This document shows, in pieces, positions 12,501 to 60,719 of a DNA stretch of 64,000 bases (its first letter is position 1; each line of letters starts with the position of its first letter). A program made the translations under genes and the position numbers. Below the pieces are notes generated by a model that saw only the letters and a list, made by a program, of their open reading frames with translations, had not been told where the DNA came from and made no database searches. The stretch is from Fimbriosthenelais zetlandica (lineage: Eukaryota): NCBI GenBank assembly GCA_977030845.1, contig OZ365110.1, forward strand, positions 27,652,001 to 27,716,000, written 5' to 3'.

Positions 12501-12936
12501 TGATGACTTTTCAAAAAACCAGTGAGTAGAAGTTAGGGGATATATAAGATATTTTTATACCACAATAAGGAAAGGGGTGTTATCTTCAATCCCTGTTTCT
12601 TCAATCTTCGACGTTTCGACATCCCAATAAAACATTCACATTCTCCCAGGTTCAGCTAAAGTCGCCCCTTAGCTGTGGTCTGTAAACTGACAGCAGACCT
12701 GTCCCACCTATGGGGATGCTACACAAGTACCCCTGTATAAAGCATTCCAATGCCAGCCACCTTCCCTCACACAGCATGAATTACATAGACCTGGCATATA
12801 AAAAAGACTGATTGCCATTCTTGTTGACGCTCACAATATGGTCTCTACGGATCCAGAAGTTTTTCTCTTATTTCCTTGTCTCAACTTCTCTCTATCCCAA
12901 TCTCAAAAGATTGTTACCGATTCTTGTCAATTATTT

Positions 12937-13063
12937 ACGCCATAGTGACCGACACTGAATCCGGTATAGTTCACTATTGCTGATAAAGCCGCAAGGCCGA
13001 AGGCCGCGCGGCTGAGTCAGCAATAGTGAACGATACCGGATTCAGTGGAGGTCACTATTGCGT
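12937..13063. repeat. 127-bp imperfect palindrome (47-bp arms) with apical GGCC-GAA-GGCC mini-hairpin
   Basis: Left arm 12937-12983 versus right arm 13017-13063 shows 4 mismatches in 47. The loop contains AGCCGC...GCGGCT and GGCCGAAGGCC (12995-13005). Confidence 0.95.
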
Positions 13064-13899
13064 TTAGTACACGTCACACATTAGAATGCGTCACACAATA
13101 GAATATACAAGATCAGTATTTTAACTTGTAATGTGTTAAAACTGATGACTTTTGACTATATTTGTCCCCTCTTCACATTCGTAGCCACTACTCCACCATT
13201 CAGCCTGCTCCACCCAACATACACTCAAACACATACACCCCTGTGCCATACACATGTTTCCATACACACACCTCCTCATACTGGCGGCACGACGGCCGGA
13301 GGCCGGAGTGCCGCGTCACGTACAATGTTTGTTTGTATACAGTCTTGGTGCCAACTTGATGAGTGACACACTGTAGAGAAAAGCAATAGTGCATCCTTCA
13401 TACAGACTTCATTTATGCTAAGCCCTACACAACCCCCCTCCCCCCACCCCGATCAGAAATAATCGTGGAATCTGTGACAGCTGGACTGTATCAATGCCAA
13501 CGGCCTCTCCCCGGCAATGAATTAATGAACTGTTCAGAAAGGAGTTATTGAAAATGTTAGACACTGGTCAAGGATAATAAAATGATTTTTATCGCTAAAC
13601 GTCTCATCACTATTTTTCTTGCCCTTTGTTGAGGTGATGCTCAGGCTCCATTTAAGCGAGAATTCGCTAATTTCTCTGTTTCTGGGACAGCTACGACATG
13701 TCACAAGCATTAGGATAAGATTACATGATGTTTATTTCTCAATGTGTCCTTCTCCCCTGTGACAGGACATAAAAAATGTCTACAAGCACATAACAAGTGA
13801 CCAATGACCTTCAGCTTACAGGTGCTAGTTATTTGGCACTGTGGGAGCAAAGTTGGCATTACACAAGTCATTCCCACGTAAGGAACATCAAGAGACAAA

Positions 13900-16276
13900 A
13901 TGCAACAAGATTATCGACCAAAATTTTCAATAGGACAGTTTGTCGATGTAGAGATCGAAGGGTCTTGGCAGCCAGCCCTTGTCCAGGATGTTTCATTGAG
14001 AGGATACAGGGAATACACTGTTTGTCTCATAGACAAGGCAGAGGTCCTCAAGGTGTGCTCTTCGAAACTACGACCATCTCAGACATTTTCCCGAATGCTG
14101 GCCGAGGAGTTAGAGACAGAAGTGCAAGATCAAAGTCAAAGTCAGGAAAGACTTTCTCATGTTCACTGGGCGGATGATGATGATTTTGAAGAAGTGGCAC
14201 CCAAGAAAACACCGCCTACCAAACCTCCAAGATTTAAAAAACTCAGTGAACCGGAGTTAGATTCGATCCAACTTGCTTCGAAGTCCAGTAAGACAAATGA
14301 CTCCACCAAGTGGGGAAGTGCAATATTCAGAGGTGAGTTTCCCCCTTATACGGGCATTTCTATACTATAACTTCTAGGACATACATGTAAGTGTTACACA
14401 TTCATCGGATCATTGGTTTGCCAATACAGTCCAGATGGACATTTTGCCTGCATTTAATTAGGCACTTTTCCCACGTCCGACATTAAGGAGCCGACACAAA
14501 AGTATCATTTTCTTTGGCCTTTGTGATCTCTTTACTGTTCCTATTCCTCAACATGGTCGTTTCGGGGTCAATTCTATGGAGATTCTCACATGTCAAAGTT
14601 ATCTTCTTTTCTTCTCAGATTGGTTAGCCGAGAGACACTTACCCACCAACTTTGAACTGATGTCCTCCCAAGACTTAGCCAACGCCTTGAGGAGGTTCTA
14701 TGGAGAGACACAGATGCGTAATGGTGAACCTTACAGCAAGGCTTCACTTCTTTCTATCAGAGGTGCTATCCAACGTCAACTCTCTGCACCTCCACACCAC
14801 CGTCACCTTGACCTGAGGAACGCCCCTGAATTTGCACCTGCAAATGCTGTCTTGGCAGGAAAATTCAGGGAATTAAAAAAAGCTGGACAAGACAGAAGCA
14901 CCCACCATCATCCTATCTCTGATACTGATTTGCTTAAACTCTATCAATCCGACCTCTTTACAACTGTCAACCCTCAGTCCCTACAGTTGAAAGTTTTCTT
15001 TGAAATGACCCTTCATTTCGGACGTAGGGGCAGAGAGGGACTGAGGGACTTGAAGGCGAAAGACGTCATATTCAGGAAAGATCCACACGGCCAGGAGTAT
15101 GCAACCCTTGCCTTCCAGCCTCTTGAAAAGAACCACCAGGGTTTTGATAGGAACGCAACTGAGCATGATCAGAGGATGTATGCTACAGGAGGGAGTAAGT
15201 GCCCTCTCAACTCACTACGCACCTATTTGCAGCATCTACATCCGGACTGCCAAGCCTTTTTCCAGAGAGCTAAAACAACTAAATGGGAGACAAGTACATC
15301 GTGGTACTGCAATATGCCCATTGGTGTCAATACTATAGGCAAGTTCATGGACCGGATTTCACAGAAGGCAAATCTCAGTGAGCGATACACAAACCACTGT
15401 ATCAGGGCAACAACTGTCACCAGTTTGCGAGATCTTGGTATAGAGGCAGCAGACATTATGTCGGTTACAGGGCATCGAAATGCTTCCTCTTTAGAGCACT
15501 ACTCCACAACATCCGCACAGAAAAGACAGCATATGTCCAATGCTCTATCAAAAAAGCTTGGGTATATAATTCCAGGCAATGGACAGGGACAGGCGAAACA
15601 GGCAAGACCACCTTCTGCTGCCTTAGGTCGTCCTCCAAGTCCCCACCCCGACGATTCAATTCCACCAGCGAACACCTCACCATGCCCAATAATTCTCCAG
15701 TGCACTACTGCACCACATGAAGCAAAGGAAAAGTGCACTAGTGCACCAGACAAACCAAAGGACAATTCGCCTGCCCAGACAAAAGAATCAAGTACACATG
15801 TATCTCAGGAAAAAGGTCCGCAGTGCACTACTGCACCACAAGAAGCAGTGCAAAATTCCCCTGCCCACACCAACAAATCAACGACACCCGCACCTGGGGA
15901 AATACCTTCAACATCATCAACAGCAGAAGGCATTGCACCTGTCCTTCTTGTCCCGTCAAGGGTGGCCAAGATGACAATGGAGGTTAACAGAACACAGAGA
16001 CCAGTGGGCTCACAAACCTTGGCCGATGTGGAAGGCAAAGGGAAAGGGAAAGGGAAAGGCAAGGCTACTCCCTCGCACAATATATTTCCTCCTCCTGTAG
16101 CCTATGAGGAAGTCAATTTCAATCTTGAACTGGATTCAGGTGAGACGATTCCTCCCTCACAGGTGGTGTTAAAGGACAAACAGCACGGACACGAGTGGAA
16201 ACTTGTCAATGGTGTACGCTCCTTATTTGATAATGCACATTTCACTAACTGTACTTTCAACATTAATATAAAATGA
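13900..16276 (+). CDS. Crypton-type (DUF3504-like) tyrosine recombinase with N-terminal Tudor/Agenet-like domain, 696 aa
   Basis: join(13900..14332,14619..16276) with a GT-AG intron (AG|gtgagt ... ttctcag|AT) gives 2091 nt in one open frame, joining STKWGSAIFR|DWL, a typical Crypton-like segment. Catalytic motifs: FGRRGREG (R281), EKNHQG (K315), TNHCIRAT (H404, R407), VTGHRN (H430), SLEHY (Y439). The C-terminus FTNCTFNINIK is also typical of this family. N-terminal residues 7-59 (KFSIGQFVDVEIEGSWQPALV...YTVCLIDKAEVLKVCSSKLRP) fit a Tudor/Agenet beta-barrel pattern. Confidence 0.9.
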
Positions 16277-16913
16277 GGGTATGACACCAGAGAAGGTGAC
16301 TACAGGTTACTGCTTCGTTCACTCCTTCTACACACTAGGCAGTGATCTGCTTCATTGTCACCTACTCTTCACACACATCAAAAGACAATATCGTTTGGTT
16401 CTTAAGTAGACTCAGTTCATTACTTGCAGACAAAGTTTACATTGCTTACACTGCCATGGACAGTAAATGTTATTGGACTTGGACTATGTACGTACACCTG
16501 TGAAAGGATTATAACCTATAGTAATTTTTGTTTAGCCTCTTAGACAGTTGGACATACACATTGACAGGCCCAACTATAATATATTTAGCCAATGTATAAA
16601 GTAAGCAAAGCTTACTTTCTCTGGATCAGTGCATATGGTTCATACTCATAACGCAGATTGAAAGAGAATTGTAGGCTTACAACTTAGAAGTCCGTACTCA
16701 CTGTCATATAAAATAAGCAGCACTTAGGCTGACATATATATAAAAGTAATAGTGCATGCCTTTCATAGACATTACACTTATATGTATTAAAGATGACATG
16801 ACTTTTTCAGTTCGTAATTGAATTTGTCATAGGCTCATAGACGTTCAATTTAGATAGCCAAAGTAAGAGTTGTCAATGTTACACTCAGGTAAGAACTTCG
16901 TCGATTTTAGGTC

Positions 16914-16919
16914 AATAAA
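16914..16919 (+). terminator. Likely polyadenylation signal of the recombinase transcript
   Basis: AATAAA about 640 bp downstream of the stop codon, immediately before the right-hand TACCGATTCT copy. Confidence 0.4.
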
Positions 16920-17573
16920 TGTACCGATTCTACAATTTGTCATCCTATTGTCATTGCCCAACGCACATACACTTTTCTATACATTTCAAGACATAATCGG
17001 GCACAACATGTCTTTCCCATGACAGCACCAAGTGAATAGTGCACCCCACACATACACGAGCGACCGTCCCTATCAGTACACTCACCACACATCCTACCAC
17101 ATCCCCTCCTCAGATCTCCTCCCTACCCCTCCTTCTCTGCATGAAGGGAAAAGTGATAGTGCACGCTCTTGATACACATTGGACAGGGGAAGGGTGCAGG
17201 AGGTTGCTGGGACGTGGGTGGGTGTGTAGGGGTGGTGCGTTCCGTGTCATGAGGAGGCAAGTAGTGAACCAACCCCTCCTTCACTGTACGAGATATTTAC
17301 ACCGTACGACAGCCCCCTCAGTGCCGTCATGTACACTATAATGGTGACATAAGACATTTATCCCATCCCACCATCGATGTGTGCATAACACATAATGATT
17401 ATAAAACATAATTCAATGAGTAATTCTCCTTTTAATGAGTTACAAGTGATTCATGCTTGGACCAGGAGCATGACTGACCTACTAACCACCCCCATGTGAC
17501 TCGTCGGAGGTCGGTGAATGAGGTCACTTGGCCAGTGTCAAGATAAAACGCTCATTTCCCACCCTGTATATCA

Positions 17574-17791
17574 GTGATCTTCGTAGGTCAGTGGTAACGT
17601 GCCTGCTTCTGGCACGGCAGGAGACGGTTCAAACCCGGGTAAAACCAGTACAGTGCACCATCAGTCTGGAGCGACTTCTACAGGGTTCACTACGGGGAAC
17701 TGGAGCGACTTCTACAGGGTTCACTACGGGGTAATAGTGAAGCTGGTATAGTGCATGAAAACGGGGTAGTAGTGTACTAATAAATACTAAT
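17574..17791 (+). mobile_element. tRNA-derived SINE (degenerate)
   Basis: A-box-like TAGGTCAGTGG (17584-17594) and B-box GGTTCAAACCC (17626-17636). An anticodon-like arm GTGCC-TGCTTCT-GGCAC (5-bp stem, 7-nt loop) lies between them. A non-tRNA body follows and ends in the tail TACTAATAAATACTAAT. Confidence 0.65.
17666..17731 (+). repeat. Exact 32-bp tandem duplication inside the SINE body
   Basis: CTGGAGCGACTTCTACAGGGTTCACTACGGGG at 17666-17697 and 17700-17731. Confidence 0.95.
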
Positions 17792-20700
17792 TTCCTTAAC
17801 AACTACATCACATCTACATCTGCAAAGTTTGACATGCAAGGAAAACCAGTATAAGCCAGAACAGTGCTTCAGTTGGATTGCCTGAAATATAATTTCTCTT
17901 CACCTGCCAGAGAGGAGTGCCAGTAAATCAAGCCATCTATAGGTACATAAACCCTGGCTTATCTCTACTTCTGATGACCACTCGTTTCTCCAGGGTCAGG
18001 GTTATCAGCCTGATAATGGGATAGGGCGGCGCGAGTTTATCTACCCTTATAATGGTTCGCCCCCGGCGTTAGTCTTGCCCGGCTCCTCATGCCTTATCAG
18101 TTAATTGATTTTTGCTTTTCATTTTCATAATTCCTTCACGGAAACAGCCCTGAAGGGCGTGGAGGCGGTCTCTTTGACCAACGAGTATAGAAAGAATACT
18201 CGTTGCTTTGACCACCTGCACATGGTCAGTTTTGGACTTAAGGCCGTCATCCACTTGTGCAATATACTCAACTTAGACATGATATTGTTTTTGCAATAAT
18301 ATTATTACGAGGCAATAAAGGTTATTAATAGTGGTTTGGTTTGGTAAAGGCCATCCTCCACTTGTGCGATTCATTGTGGGAGACACGTATAATGGACATT
18401 GTCGCAAAGAAAACAGTACTAGAAGTAGATGGTATTGGTGTGGACATCCTTGCCCGATAAGAAGGTAAGACCACAAGGTTCTATCTATATTCCTGGCACA
18501 GATCTATACAGATTATACATCAGATATTCGTTGCATCATAGCAGCCACTGACATAATAATAAAATGTAATGGTATAATTGAAGGGTTGTTTCAATTGGAA
18601 GGGCTTGGACCAGTCTATGCTCAATGTGTGGCTATCTCTGTGGTTTGGGGCGGTGGTAGGAGCGGGGTGGTACCTTCACTAACAGGGAAGACACGTGGTA
18701 TATGACGTTAACCCCCCTCCATCCTCATCTTCGTCCACACCCATCACCCTCCAAAGTCCCATATTCAACCCCATCCCCCAGTCTATATCCACCCTCCCTT
18801 AAAACCACAAATACAGTTTCTCCCTCAAATTATGCCACACTTCACGCACGCGCATGCCTTAAAGCATGCGCACATCCTTATCTCGATGACCTCGTCCCTC
18901 TTCAAAAAATACACATGACACAGAACCCGACCACGTGAGGTATAAGTGGCCCTCTGGATCTTTCCATCAATTGGTAAACTTTGGGGAAATATGCAGAGTA
19001 ACAGGGGACATGCTACATATATATGGAATTTCTATCACCAGCCTGTTCAACCAAAACTGCATATCTGACTCAGTAACCTCCTATTTTCTTAGAGTAAATC
19101 CAGTCCATCTCCGATGGATTCTGAAATATTCCCCTCCAATTGAATTCTCCCACAAAACCTAAATCTAAGTTGAACCCTTCCCCCACACACAGAGAAGGCA
19201 CCCGTCATATTTATACCCTCAATATATTAGCGATCAACACACAAGGGTATGCCTGGGGCGACATGCCAAGGGTCTATAGGAGGGAGCGGGACCTGCGCGC
19301 CGAACCATATGGCACGAGAACGCCACGACCGGGATTCCACTCAGATGACCTTCACCTCTGGCTCTTTTATTCCTCCAGGGTCCCTCCCAGTGTCGCTATG
19401 GCAGCAGAAGCACCAGTCACATACCCACCCACCCACTCCCCCTCCACTCACCCAACCACCACTCGTCCTATGAGAAGGAGGACCTGAATAAGAATTCGGC
19501 GAACTCCACAAAGTTGACATCTCAACCCCTATAAATCTTAGGTATTTCGAAGCAGGTCAGCAATATGATTATTTTTAATATTAAAGGGATTTAACCTCTG
19601 TGATGGTATGTATTTATAAAGTGTCACCTGTGGTTAATTTTTTGGGAGGGCAACATGACCAAAATGATAAAAGTTGGAAGTCAATTTAATGATGCTCAAT
19701 TGGATTAGATAAACGACATAATCCAAGAGAGGATCTGTCATAGAGAATGTCTCATGAGGATTGTTCAGATCACTTTATTGTGATTCCGAGCAATTATATA
19801 AGGCAACAAAGTAACAATATGTGAATCTATCTATCTTTCAAGGGAATGTCTTGATGTTCAGTTACGAAAATGTACCCTGAGTTATTACCTTCAGAATTAA
19901 TGTAACAGTATAATTTACTGAGTCATTGATGGGGGGCTAGAAATGGATTTACCGTGTTTAATAAATATAACATAAAAACCCAGAATCTCTGCGCCAAAAA
20001 GCGAGGATAAATCACGAGTGTAATACTTGTCTCGTCTCAGGGTCAGGATCAGAGGGCTCTCTATGGACTGCATGCCAAAGTATACAGTGAGACTCATTCA
20101 AACATCCATTCATCTGTTATAGCCTCATCTCTCTGGCAGGAAGTCTGTAATACCAACTGCAATTTTTGTGGTTCAAGTGATACCAAACAACATATAGATG
20201 AGTGTCCATTTAAACATGTTACCATTGTAGACTGCCTACCAGACTTACTATAGAAACTCTGTCAGACAAGTATCGGCTAATATCGGGAGAACAAGCCCTC
20301 TCCAGGGATGATGACCTCAGGAAAGCTGTATTCTAATAGATCAATGATATAATACAACAATATAGCAGAATCCTACTATAGATTTTTTAAGCTAGTAGAA
20401 TAATTAAGAACTTTCAAGATGAGAAGGTCAAGGTCTAACCACTTTGGTCCACTCAGGTCACGCTCAGGTCTCGCGGCACGTAAACGAGATCATTGTATGG
20501 GTGTTTCAATGGGGGCAATCATAGCAGTCATGGCGTTTGTGAATATACTGGTTAATGCATACATGCCCCGGGGGCATAAAGCTTATACCCCCTGAGGGGG
20601 TCAATCATACATCATTCCATCCCATATGATAATCACTGACCCCACATGGTAGCGCAAGAACCTCACATTGGAATATTAAATGGGCAGTTGATTTTCATTA

Positions 20701-41212: not shown

Positions 41213-41423
41213 GAAAACGTTTCAAATTCCACCGGCAGGAATCTGAAAACGTTTTTAAGTTCCCTCCTACAGGAATATGAAAACGTTTTCAAATTCACTC
41301 CCCAGGAATCTGAAAAGGTTTTCAAATTCCTGATGTGGAGTAAAAGCGGGGAGGGAATCTGAAAACGTTTTCAAGTTCACTCCGCAGGAATCTGAAAACG
41401 TTTTCAAGTTCCCTCTCCAGGAA
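41213..41423 (+). repeat. ~33-bp minisatellite with palindromic core TGAAAACGTTTTCA
   Basis: About 6 degenerate units of GAAAACGTTTTCAARTTCMCTCCNCAGGAATCT, interrupted once near 41331-41354. An inverted partial copy lies at about 41460-41480. Confidence 0.9.
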
Positions 41424-60502: not shown

Positions 60503-60719
60503 TTGTACAATAAAATCGTAGATGGCGAGGGATCGGCGAGGGTGCCCTCGCGGTGCGATTAAATTGTTGAAGTGCTGTTTTTTTCTAAAAAGTGCTTGGA
60601 TAACTGCATGTTATTGCATTATCCAAGCACTGTTTTCTCAAAAACAATGCTTGGACAATGCAATTGCTCCGCGAGGGTACCCTCGCTGATTCCTCGCCAT
60701 CGACGATTTTATTGTACAA
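60503..60719. mobile_element. 217-bp nested palindromic MITE-like element with 51-bp TIRs ending in TTGTACAA
   Basis: Arms 60503-60553 and 60669-60719 show 4 mismatches in 51. Each arm contains the palindrome GCGAGGGTRCCCTCGC. An internal hairpin AGTGCTTGGATAA...TTATCCAAGCACT is present. No TSD is visible. Confidence 0.8.

Follow-up and report, generated by a model that had tools for sequence, protein, structure and literature searches.

The window analysed here, a 64,000-nucleotide stretch of Fimbriosthenelais zetlandica contig OZ365110.1 (positions 27,652,001 to 27,716,000), carries at 13900-16276 on the forward strand what is very probably the recombinase gene of a CryptonA-type DNA transposon, autonomous or recently immobilised. 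The same high confidence covers, jointly with this identity, the make-up of the 696-residue product: a Royal-family barrel, an acidic linker, a complete Cre-like recombinase and a disordered tail with a motif at its end. It refers to identity and architecture, not to the function of the barrel. The parts of the gene were placed as follows, in window coordinates.

13900..14332, forward strand: exon 1, codons 1-144 and the first base of codon 145 (ATG at 13900, donor at 14332/14333)
14333..14618, forward strand: intron, 286 nt, phase 1, GT-AG (same-codon intron in four relatives)
14619..16276, forward strand: exon 2, codons 145-696 and the stop (open reading frame, Pfam, homologues)
13924..14079, forward strand: predicted Royal-family (Tudor/Agenet-like) five-stranded beta-barrel, residues 9-60 (AlphaFold2, Foldseek, VIA-align)
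14080..14229, forward strand: acidic helix and linker, residues 61-110, then a basic stretch (alignment A1, model helix 61-72, charges)
14230..15550, forward strand: Cre-like two-domain tyrosine recombinase (core-binding helical and catalytic domains), residues 111-455, interrupted by the intron (Pfam, AlphaFold2, Foldseek)
15026..15028, forward strand: codon of R281, the first catalytic arginine, in LHFGRRGREGL (invariant in alignment A2)
15500..15502, forward strand: codon of Y439, the nucleophile tyrosine (invariant in A2, aligned to the XerA tyrosine)
15551..16273, forward strand: predicted disordered P/S/T/Q-rich tail, residues 456-696 (predicted local distance difference test, pLDDT, below 50; tandem repeats)
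16148-16165, forward strand: tail motif IPPSQV (recurs in P0001, P0012, P0015, L006, L009 and L010)
16241-16273, forward strand: C-terminal tail motif F-T-N-C-T-F-N-I-N-I-K (recurs in the same six relatives)

The product of exon 2 matched DUF3504 (4.8e-8; 33.7 bits against a cutoff of 29.7) and Phage_integrase (3.1e-6, above the curated cut-off) in Pfam, with a further weak match to QRICH1. Database searching returned 95 homologues. The strongest match has E 4.5e-103 and is about 50% identical, and those that carry a species name belong to two hemichordates, a scallop and a sea spider. PF12012 and PF00589 occur in homologues, and no database protein was more than 55% identical. In the 23-sequence alignment A2, R281, H404, R407 and Y439 were invariant and K315 and H430 were conserved at 90% or more, and the HxxR...H...Y block matched that of archaeal XerA (5hxy) in a profile alignment. 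AlphaFold2 modelled the exon-2 product with pLDDT values of 85-97 over its residues 1-290, dropping to about 67-70 by residue 320. When this model was compared with known structures using Foldseek, it matched full-length Cre in loxP complexes (template modelling score by target about 0.6 over some 320 columns), and further matches were QRICH1 (9hjt), lambda Int, Tn1549 Int, XerA and XerH. Given the catalytic conservation, the model and the Cre matches, nothing is visibly missing from a two-domain Cre-like tyrosine recombinase. The first-pass annotation had described a catalytically complete Crypton tyrosine recombinase and had assigned R281, K315, H404, R407, H430 and Y439, together with W23 and Y39 of the barrel; all eight residues lie where it placed them, the six catalytic ones are intact, and the family matches and the predicted Cre-like fold bear that description out.

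Two forward-strand open reading frames (ORFs) lie at the locus, 13900..14370 and 14576..16276. The second, of 566 aa, is the longest in the window and more than three times as long as the next (157 aa). Joining 13900-14332 to 14619-16276 gave 2091 nt encoding 696 aa with the frame kept and one terminal stop, which reproduces the spliced ORF, free of stops and frameshifts, that had been proposed earlier. The signals at the junction are a GAG|GTGAGT donor and a ...TTCTCAG|AT acceptor after a pyrimidine run, giving a GT-AG intron of phase 1. Four relatives that lack the intron (P0015, P0036, P0046 and P0057) read unbroken over the position of the exon 1/exon 2 junction, with the text ...RF-K..-EL...SKS.T...T-W-G...F-R/K-D/E-W-L.... 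A search with exon 1 against 1.8 billion representative proteins found 17 homologous ORFs of 88-238 aa covering residues 7-144, and those that reach the 3' end of the query stop matching after ...FRG, that is, at the donor, as would happen if each ran into an intron there. Four relatives with available DNA have a GT-AG intron, of 160, 263, 317 or 472 nt, in the same codon and phase (F-R/Q | D/E-W). Homology and the conserved intron thus support the splicing of exon 1 to exon 2. Two other accounts of exon 1, as a chance ORF or as a captured host exon without function, were rejected: it is conserved across lineages only 21-40% identical, and a mobile relative carries it within its boundaries.

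An exon-1 homologue was present in every close relative with upstream DNA, namely L001, L006 and L007 from Logan run ERR14368249 and L004, L005, L009 and L010 from ENA assembly ERZ25767047; that of L004 was recognised through profile comparison (95.8% probability). In a maximum-likelihood tree of recombinase cores, all seven barrel-bearing lineages fell into one clade with 100/99 support, which also contains P0012 and also P0015, with a proline-rich N-terminus in place of the barrel. Searched as a profile, alignment A1 gave five proteins, P0195 being the sole addition to the exon-1 search. By these sequence comparisons the barrel is a shared trait of one recombinase clade, not a local accident.

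One barrel-bearing relative, a Crypton of 3.83 kb, was found in four dispersed copies on megabase-scale contigs of ERZ25767047:

L010:4824-8655, 3.83-kb barrel-bearing Crypton, copy one
L005:6934-10647, copy two
L011:4814-8654, copy three
L012:5022-8730, copy four

The copies have about 3.8 kb in common at 95-97% identity, their flanks are unrelated, and their ends are sharp and alike, the left beginning TTAGGGAATAACGCACGG... and the right consisting of a 12-bp palindrome followed by CCGTGTTATAA; no target duplication was found at the four copies. The barrel exon is within the element, some 300 bp from its left boundary. The corresponding protein cluster (90%) has nine members, truncated ones included, on eight contigs of 0.33-2.7 Mb, six of them longer than 1 Mb. 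Close relatives with the same architecture are therefore multi-copy mobile elements, and the window copy itself may be mobile too. The perfect palindrome, CGCTACGTAGCG, stands 12 bp from the right end, and the two ends carry imperfect inverted motifs of about 10 bp, ATAACGCACGG and CCGTGTTAT, which would face each other across some 11 bp in a circularised element and so form a lox-like junction site. Repeats also occur within this element: a 163-bp unit repeated 2.5 times in tandem in its 1.4-kb non-coding 3' part (L010:7535-7935), and an 86-bp unit repeated twice inside its intron (L010:5573-5745).

The Logan contigs of three further lineages start 250-300 bp upstream of the ATG, a pattern that suggests the repeat boundaries seen in such assemblies. 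A conserved 5'-terminal 20-mer, TTAWGTCCKTTAWMCMAYGT, lies there, 250-300 bp upstream of the ATG in contigs of ERR14368249:

L001:23-42
L002:2-21
L006:5-24
L007:10-29

It is identical between two lineages whose coding sequences are only about 70% identical, and is probably the left-end recognition sequence of these elements. Repeated short motifs are present in the non-coding ends of the relatives. A different fusion was seen in P0036 (Pecten maximus LOC117315013), where residues 254-314 form a zf-C4 nuclear-receptor-type zinc finger (Pfam E 4.3e-11) N-terminal to a Crypton-type recombinase, the whole being annotated as a gene. The Pecten protein points to CryptonA recombinases taking up binding modules of various kinds at their N-termini, and the barrel may be one case of a wider swapping of N-terminal targeting modules in this group.

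The barrel was modelled with AlphaFold2 from a 13-sequence family alignment. Residues 11-60 reached pLDDT 92-97 and formed five strands (14-19, 22-32, 38-43, 49-53 and 57-59), with a 3-10 turn before the last strand; the helix at 61-72 comes next, followed by a linker of low confidence. In the PDB, Foldseek matched the model to the TbTudor structure 6if4 (template modelling score by target 0.78), to PWWP domains, to the MRG15 chromo-barrel and to the Agenet domains of ADCP1 and of NtAGDP3 (the latter at 1.2 Å over 52 residues), and also to a PWWP domain bound to single-stranded DNA and to the SH3-like C-terminal domain of Rous sarcoma virus (RSV) integrase. Among AlphaFold DB Swiss-Prot models it matched MRG1/2, SPF30, SMN, spindle-E and an Arabidopsis DUF724 Agenet domain (0.9 Å over 52 residues, 31% identity). 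VIA-align superposed it on whole Tudor, chromo-barrel and Agenet domains with Z 8-9.5 and root-mean-square deviations of 0.9-1.6 Å, the partners including MRG15/MRG2, the UHRF1 tandem Tudor domain (TTD) and the Tudor domains of PHF1/PHF19/PHF20 and TDRD3. The Tudor- or SH3-like N-terminal fold that the first-pass annotation had anticipated is thus what the models predict. The Agenet-like scaffold follows the pattern G-x-x-V-x-V, W-x-P-A-x-V, Y-x-V, L-R-P, into which the window residues fit (F9..G12..V15.V17, W23.P25A26.V28, Y39.V41, L57R58P59), so that the F-x-x-G-x-x-V-x-V...L-R-P signature read earlier from the sequence is present within residues 9-59. Sequence-level matches were faint: Pfam assigned one of 13 relatives' barrels to Agenet (E 0.08), the best PDB match to a profile of the barrel family was AGDP3, in its fourth Agenet domain (whole-sequence E 0.006, domain E 0.13), and the protein atlas gave weak Tudor/Agenet leads (0.80-0.85). 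On the modelled structure, the barrel is accepted as a Tudor/Agenet-like Royal-family barrel at the level of fold, and only as a putative member of a curated family.

The linker after the barrel carries a net charge of -8 over some 45-50 residues, and alignment A1 shows conserved motif sequence in it, E-[LM]-P-D-x-[ST]-Q and P-W-x-D-x-x-[DE]-F-x-x-P-x-P; the L009/L010 lineage retains the barrel and lacks the acidic motif. In the tail, two short motifs are conserved, IP[CP]SQ[VI] preceded by acidic residues and the C-terminal F-x-N-C-x-F-N-[IL], while the rest is unconserved. Both are common to relatives about 50% identical in the core, and may serve in trans-docking or in binding a host factor. 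Docking of the C-terminal motif onto the recombinase was considered and rejected, AlphaFold2 having put the entire tail below pLDDT 50. The coding sequence of the tail also contains a 33-nt duplication (1.9 copies, 15699-15762, repeating QCTTAP...) and an AAGGGA/AAGGCA microsatellite encoding (GK)5 (16032-16062).

Several observations weigh against the reading given so far. The 14332/14619 splice is predicted from homology. Within the 64 kb no second copy, terminal repeat or target duplication was detectable. The Foldseek E-values of the barrel were only about 1e-3, and a Pfam search of the window copy's barrel gave no match. The aromatic cage also appears incomplete. By pattern alignment to the 53BP1 cage, the window positions are I19, W23, L43, D45 and A47. 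In ADCP1 the cage consists of Y129, W134 and F151 (PMC6318295), and a manual alignment by spacing and pattern, made without ligand superposition, puts E18, W23 and L43 at the equivalent positions, leaving W23 as the sole aromatic residue; in relatives the first position is L, Y, W or F and the third L, I, V or E. The first-pass annotation had doubted methyl-lysine reading because most cage positions seemed non-aromatic, with W23 and Y39 as the evident aromatic ones. By the same manual alignment that doubt stands for the cage as a whole and for W23, but Y39 seems to belong to the scaffold, as the tyrosine of the Agenet "Y-x-V" strand, and not to the cage. Finally, the barrel is roughly neutral (net charge +1 in the window copy, -3 to +4 among the relatives), and this speaks against DNA binding of a non-specific kind.

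On the standard Crypton model, the recombinase would move the element by Cre-like cleavage and rejoining. Excision as a circle and reintegration would proceed via a Holliday junction, in two successive strand exchanges for which Y439 supplies the nucleophile. The barrel, we infer, would serve as an accessory tether by which the recombinase reaches a macromolecular partner. Tentatively, and by analogy with chromoviruses, that partner might be a chromatin feature or a chromatin protein that biases the landing site. If so, this Crypton clade would carry its own Royal-family reader, tether its recombinase to a chromatin state or protein and choose its integration sites in that way, as an independent counterpart of chromovirus targeting; we regard this as conceivable, with the balance of probability against it.

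A different partner would be the element's own subterminal DNA. By analogy with lambda Int, the barrel would then be an arm-type DNA-binding domain on subterminal sites while the core holds the crossover site, building the synapse and not choosing the target. We consider this unlikely, although the layout of the protein resembles that of heterobivalent integrases, in which a small beta domain and a flexible linker precede the core-binding and catalytic domains, and although candidate sites were seen on both sides of the gene:

12937..13615, no strand: candidate 5' subterminal region, membership uncertain (hairpin and ATAGTG sites)
12937-13063, no strand: hairpin with 62-nt arms and four ATAGTGA-type sites (repeat search)
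13379-13394 and 13608, no strand: ATAGTG sites of the candidate 5' region
16742..17760, no strand: candidate 3' subterminal region, membership uncertain (motif sites and tandem repeat)
16742, 17036, 17149, 17734 and 17748, no strand: ATAGTGCA-type sites of the candidate 3' region
17666-17731, no strand: perfect tandem repeat of 34 bp, 1.9 copies, in the candidate 3' region
17262 and 17666-17760, no strand: also part of the ATAGTG(A/C)A-type cluster (clustered on both sides of the gene)

Of 43 ATAGTG/CACTAT hexamers in the window, 12 fall in the 2.5 kb flanking the coding sequence against 1.7 expected (binomial P about 7e-8, for a region chosen post hoc and with some sites non-independent, lying in hairpin arms or tandem units). 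Three near-identical 16-mers, AAAAGYRATAGTGCAY, stand on the forward strand at 13379, 16742 and 17149, and all five GTTCACTA/TAGTGAAC 8-mers of the window fall between 12969 and 17719. These sites may be subterminal recombinase sites of an element of about 4.8 kb or, equally, unrelated repeats; in the first case the arm-site model would gain weight. It also draws on the short motifs repeated in the relatives' non-coding ends and on the fold matches to the PWWP domain bound to single-stranded DNA and to the RSV integrase C-terminal domain. Several points tell against it: the barrel is not basic, its nearest fold relatives are overwhelmingly readers of histones or peptides, the flanking motif is not common to the relatives, and the sequences concerned may belong to other repeats. 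Nor, with up to 3 mismatches, was the 16-mer pattern enriched over shuffles: it occurred 10 times in the whole window against 4.8 +/- 2.2 expected, a number reached by 3 of 100 shuffles.

Other searches of the flanks were negative. Between 12900-13899, upstream of the gene, and 16277-18000, downstream of it, five 10-mers recurred as inverted or direct repeats against 3.8 expected, no direct repeat of at least 60 nt was found in the whole window, and the Logan 5' 20-mer and the end motifs of the 3.83-kb element, sought in the window with up to 5 mismatches by length, gave one weightless 9-mer match. The lack of terminal repeats in the window fits animal Cryptons, which normally have none (PMC3212892), and is uninformative as to domestication. 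A tRNA-derived short interspersed element downstream, considered for a B-box-like GGTTCAAACCC near 17626, is not supported, as neither ARAGORN nor Rfam found a tRNA.

The partner might, with similarly low probability in our judgement, be another protein, the barrel being an adaptor for self-association of protomers or for recruitment of a host factor and reading neither histone marks nor DNA. The incomplete cage, as judged from the alignment, would suit an adaptor or oligomerisation module, as would the conserved short linear motifs that adjoin the barrel and occur in the tail; Tudor/SH3-like barrels commonly bind peptides, and UHRF1 TTD-peptide complexes are among the top fold matches. The acidic P-W-x-D-x-x-DF-x-x-P-x-P motif may act as a second docking site, but it is missing from the one lineage noted above that keeps the barrel, and the adaptor role is proposed by inference.

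Improbable, in our judgement, is a domesticated host gene derived from a barrel-bearing Crypton, single-copy, with a cellular role in chromatin or DNA transactions and its catalytic residues kept: a canonical intron, a long intact ORF, a long lineage-specific tail, the lack of recognisable termini, repeats or a second copy in 64 kb, the repeated domestication of Crypton recombinases (PMC3212892) and the Pecten fusion annotated as a gene would fit it, but the missing terminal repeats are uninformative for the reason given, all six catalytic residues are intact here and not in known domesticated DUF3504 genes (PMC3212892), and the intron and the architecture are common to relatives that are clearly multi-copy and mobile.

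Of 13 ORFs in the window that reach 110 aa, the ten outside the Crypton locus gave no Pfam match and no reverse transcriptase. Lack of retroelement genes is what sets Cryptons apart from DIRS, Ngaro and PAT elements. A DIRS-type retroelement was rejected, there being no reverse transcriptase and the intron being conserved; the conserved intron argues for a DNA-only life cycle. Two inverted repeats were seen elsewhere, at 60503-60719 (101-nt arms, 82% complementarity, 15-nt loop) and at 41237-41414 (67-nt arms, 70% complementarity, 44-nt loop).

The preferred reading thus remains a CryptonA-type element whose recombinase bears a Royal-family barrel. Among eukaryotic DNA transposons, Cryptons are, to our knowledge, the class that is understood least, and what is said of their ends, mechanism and choice of target is largely inferred. 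Animal Cryptons have so far been described as a bare recombinase, and the clade reported here carries a conserved Tudor/Agenet-type barrel. The architecture was not known to have been described when it was first noted, and no description was found in the literature searched: among the top-ranked full-text results on Crypton or DUF3504 with Tudor, Agenet, PWWP, chromodomain or SH3-like domains there was no account of the fusion, and neither the 2026 Glomhopper paper nor the ALOG paper describes one. Since Pfam misses the barrel, domain-architecture databases would not show the fusion. The barrel provides a testable handle on how a eukaryotic tyrosine-recombinase transposon might find its sites or assemble its synapse, and it extends the list of mobile elements with captured Royal-family domains beyond those with DDE integrases. 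Cryptons have repeatedly been domesticated into chromatin-associated regulators (ZMYM, QRICH1), and a Crypton with a chromatin-type module is relevant to how domestication starts. Genome engineers may also take an interest in a eukaryotic Cre-like recombinase that is modular by nature and whose tethering domain is separable.

Compared with known systems, the layout of the protein resembles that of lambda Int and the Tn916/Tn1549 integrases, in which a small N-terminal beta domain and a linker likewise come before the core-binding and catalytic parts; the fold of the catalytic part matches, and short repeated motifs, as candidate sites, flank the window gene. The N-terminal domain of lambda Int is a three-stranded sheet with a helix, and that of the window gene is predicted to be a five-stranded SH3-like barrel. 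With the Agenet domains of ADCP1 and AGDP3 (PMC6318295) and the Tudor domains of PHF1, TDRD3, SMN and the UHRF1 TTD, the barrel superposes over 50-60 residues at the deviations and Z-scores given above, but it lacks Pfam-level membership and has E18, W23 and L43 in place of the Y, W and F of the ADCP1 cage. The domesticated genes ZMYM2/3/4, QRICH1, KCTD1 and KIAA1958 have the DUF3504 fold in common with it, and QRICH1 (9hjt) came up in both sequence and fold matches. They differ in their catalytic set, which is incomplete there (PMC3212892) and kept in the window gene, and in the domains to which they are joined (MYM zinc fingers, BTB and others). The background statement of the first-pass annotation, that such genes have generally lost catalytic residues, agrees with that source, except that it had listed KCTD15: DUF3504 is present in KCTD1 isoform b and not in KCTD15 (Kojima & Jurka 2011, PMC3212892).

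Chromoviruses, which are Ty3/gypsy retrotransposons with a chromodomain at the end of their integrase (PMC3605345), are alike in that the recombination enzyme of a mobile element is fused to a Royal-family barrel, and they offer a precedent for built-in chromatin targeting. There, however, a DDE integrase carries a C-terminal reader, with a cage that is usable in many lineages, whereas here a tyrosine recombinase carries an N-terminal barrel of Agenet/Tudor-like type whose cage is apparently incomplete and whose targeting role would follow by analogy only. Also among the closest known systems are the animal Cryptons, which have no C-terminal domain and no terminal repeats and for which no N-terminal accessory domain is mentioned (Kojima & Jurka 2011, PMC3212892). 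In common with CryptonA, the window gene has a DUF3504/Phage_integrase recombinase with the full catalytic set, an intron, no reverse transcriptase and closest homologues from animals, and one of its barrel-bearing relatives is multi-copy with sharp ends and no target duplication. To that pattern the window gene adds a predicted Royal-family barrel, an acidic linker and a long tail with a conserved C-terminal peptide motif.

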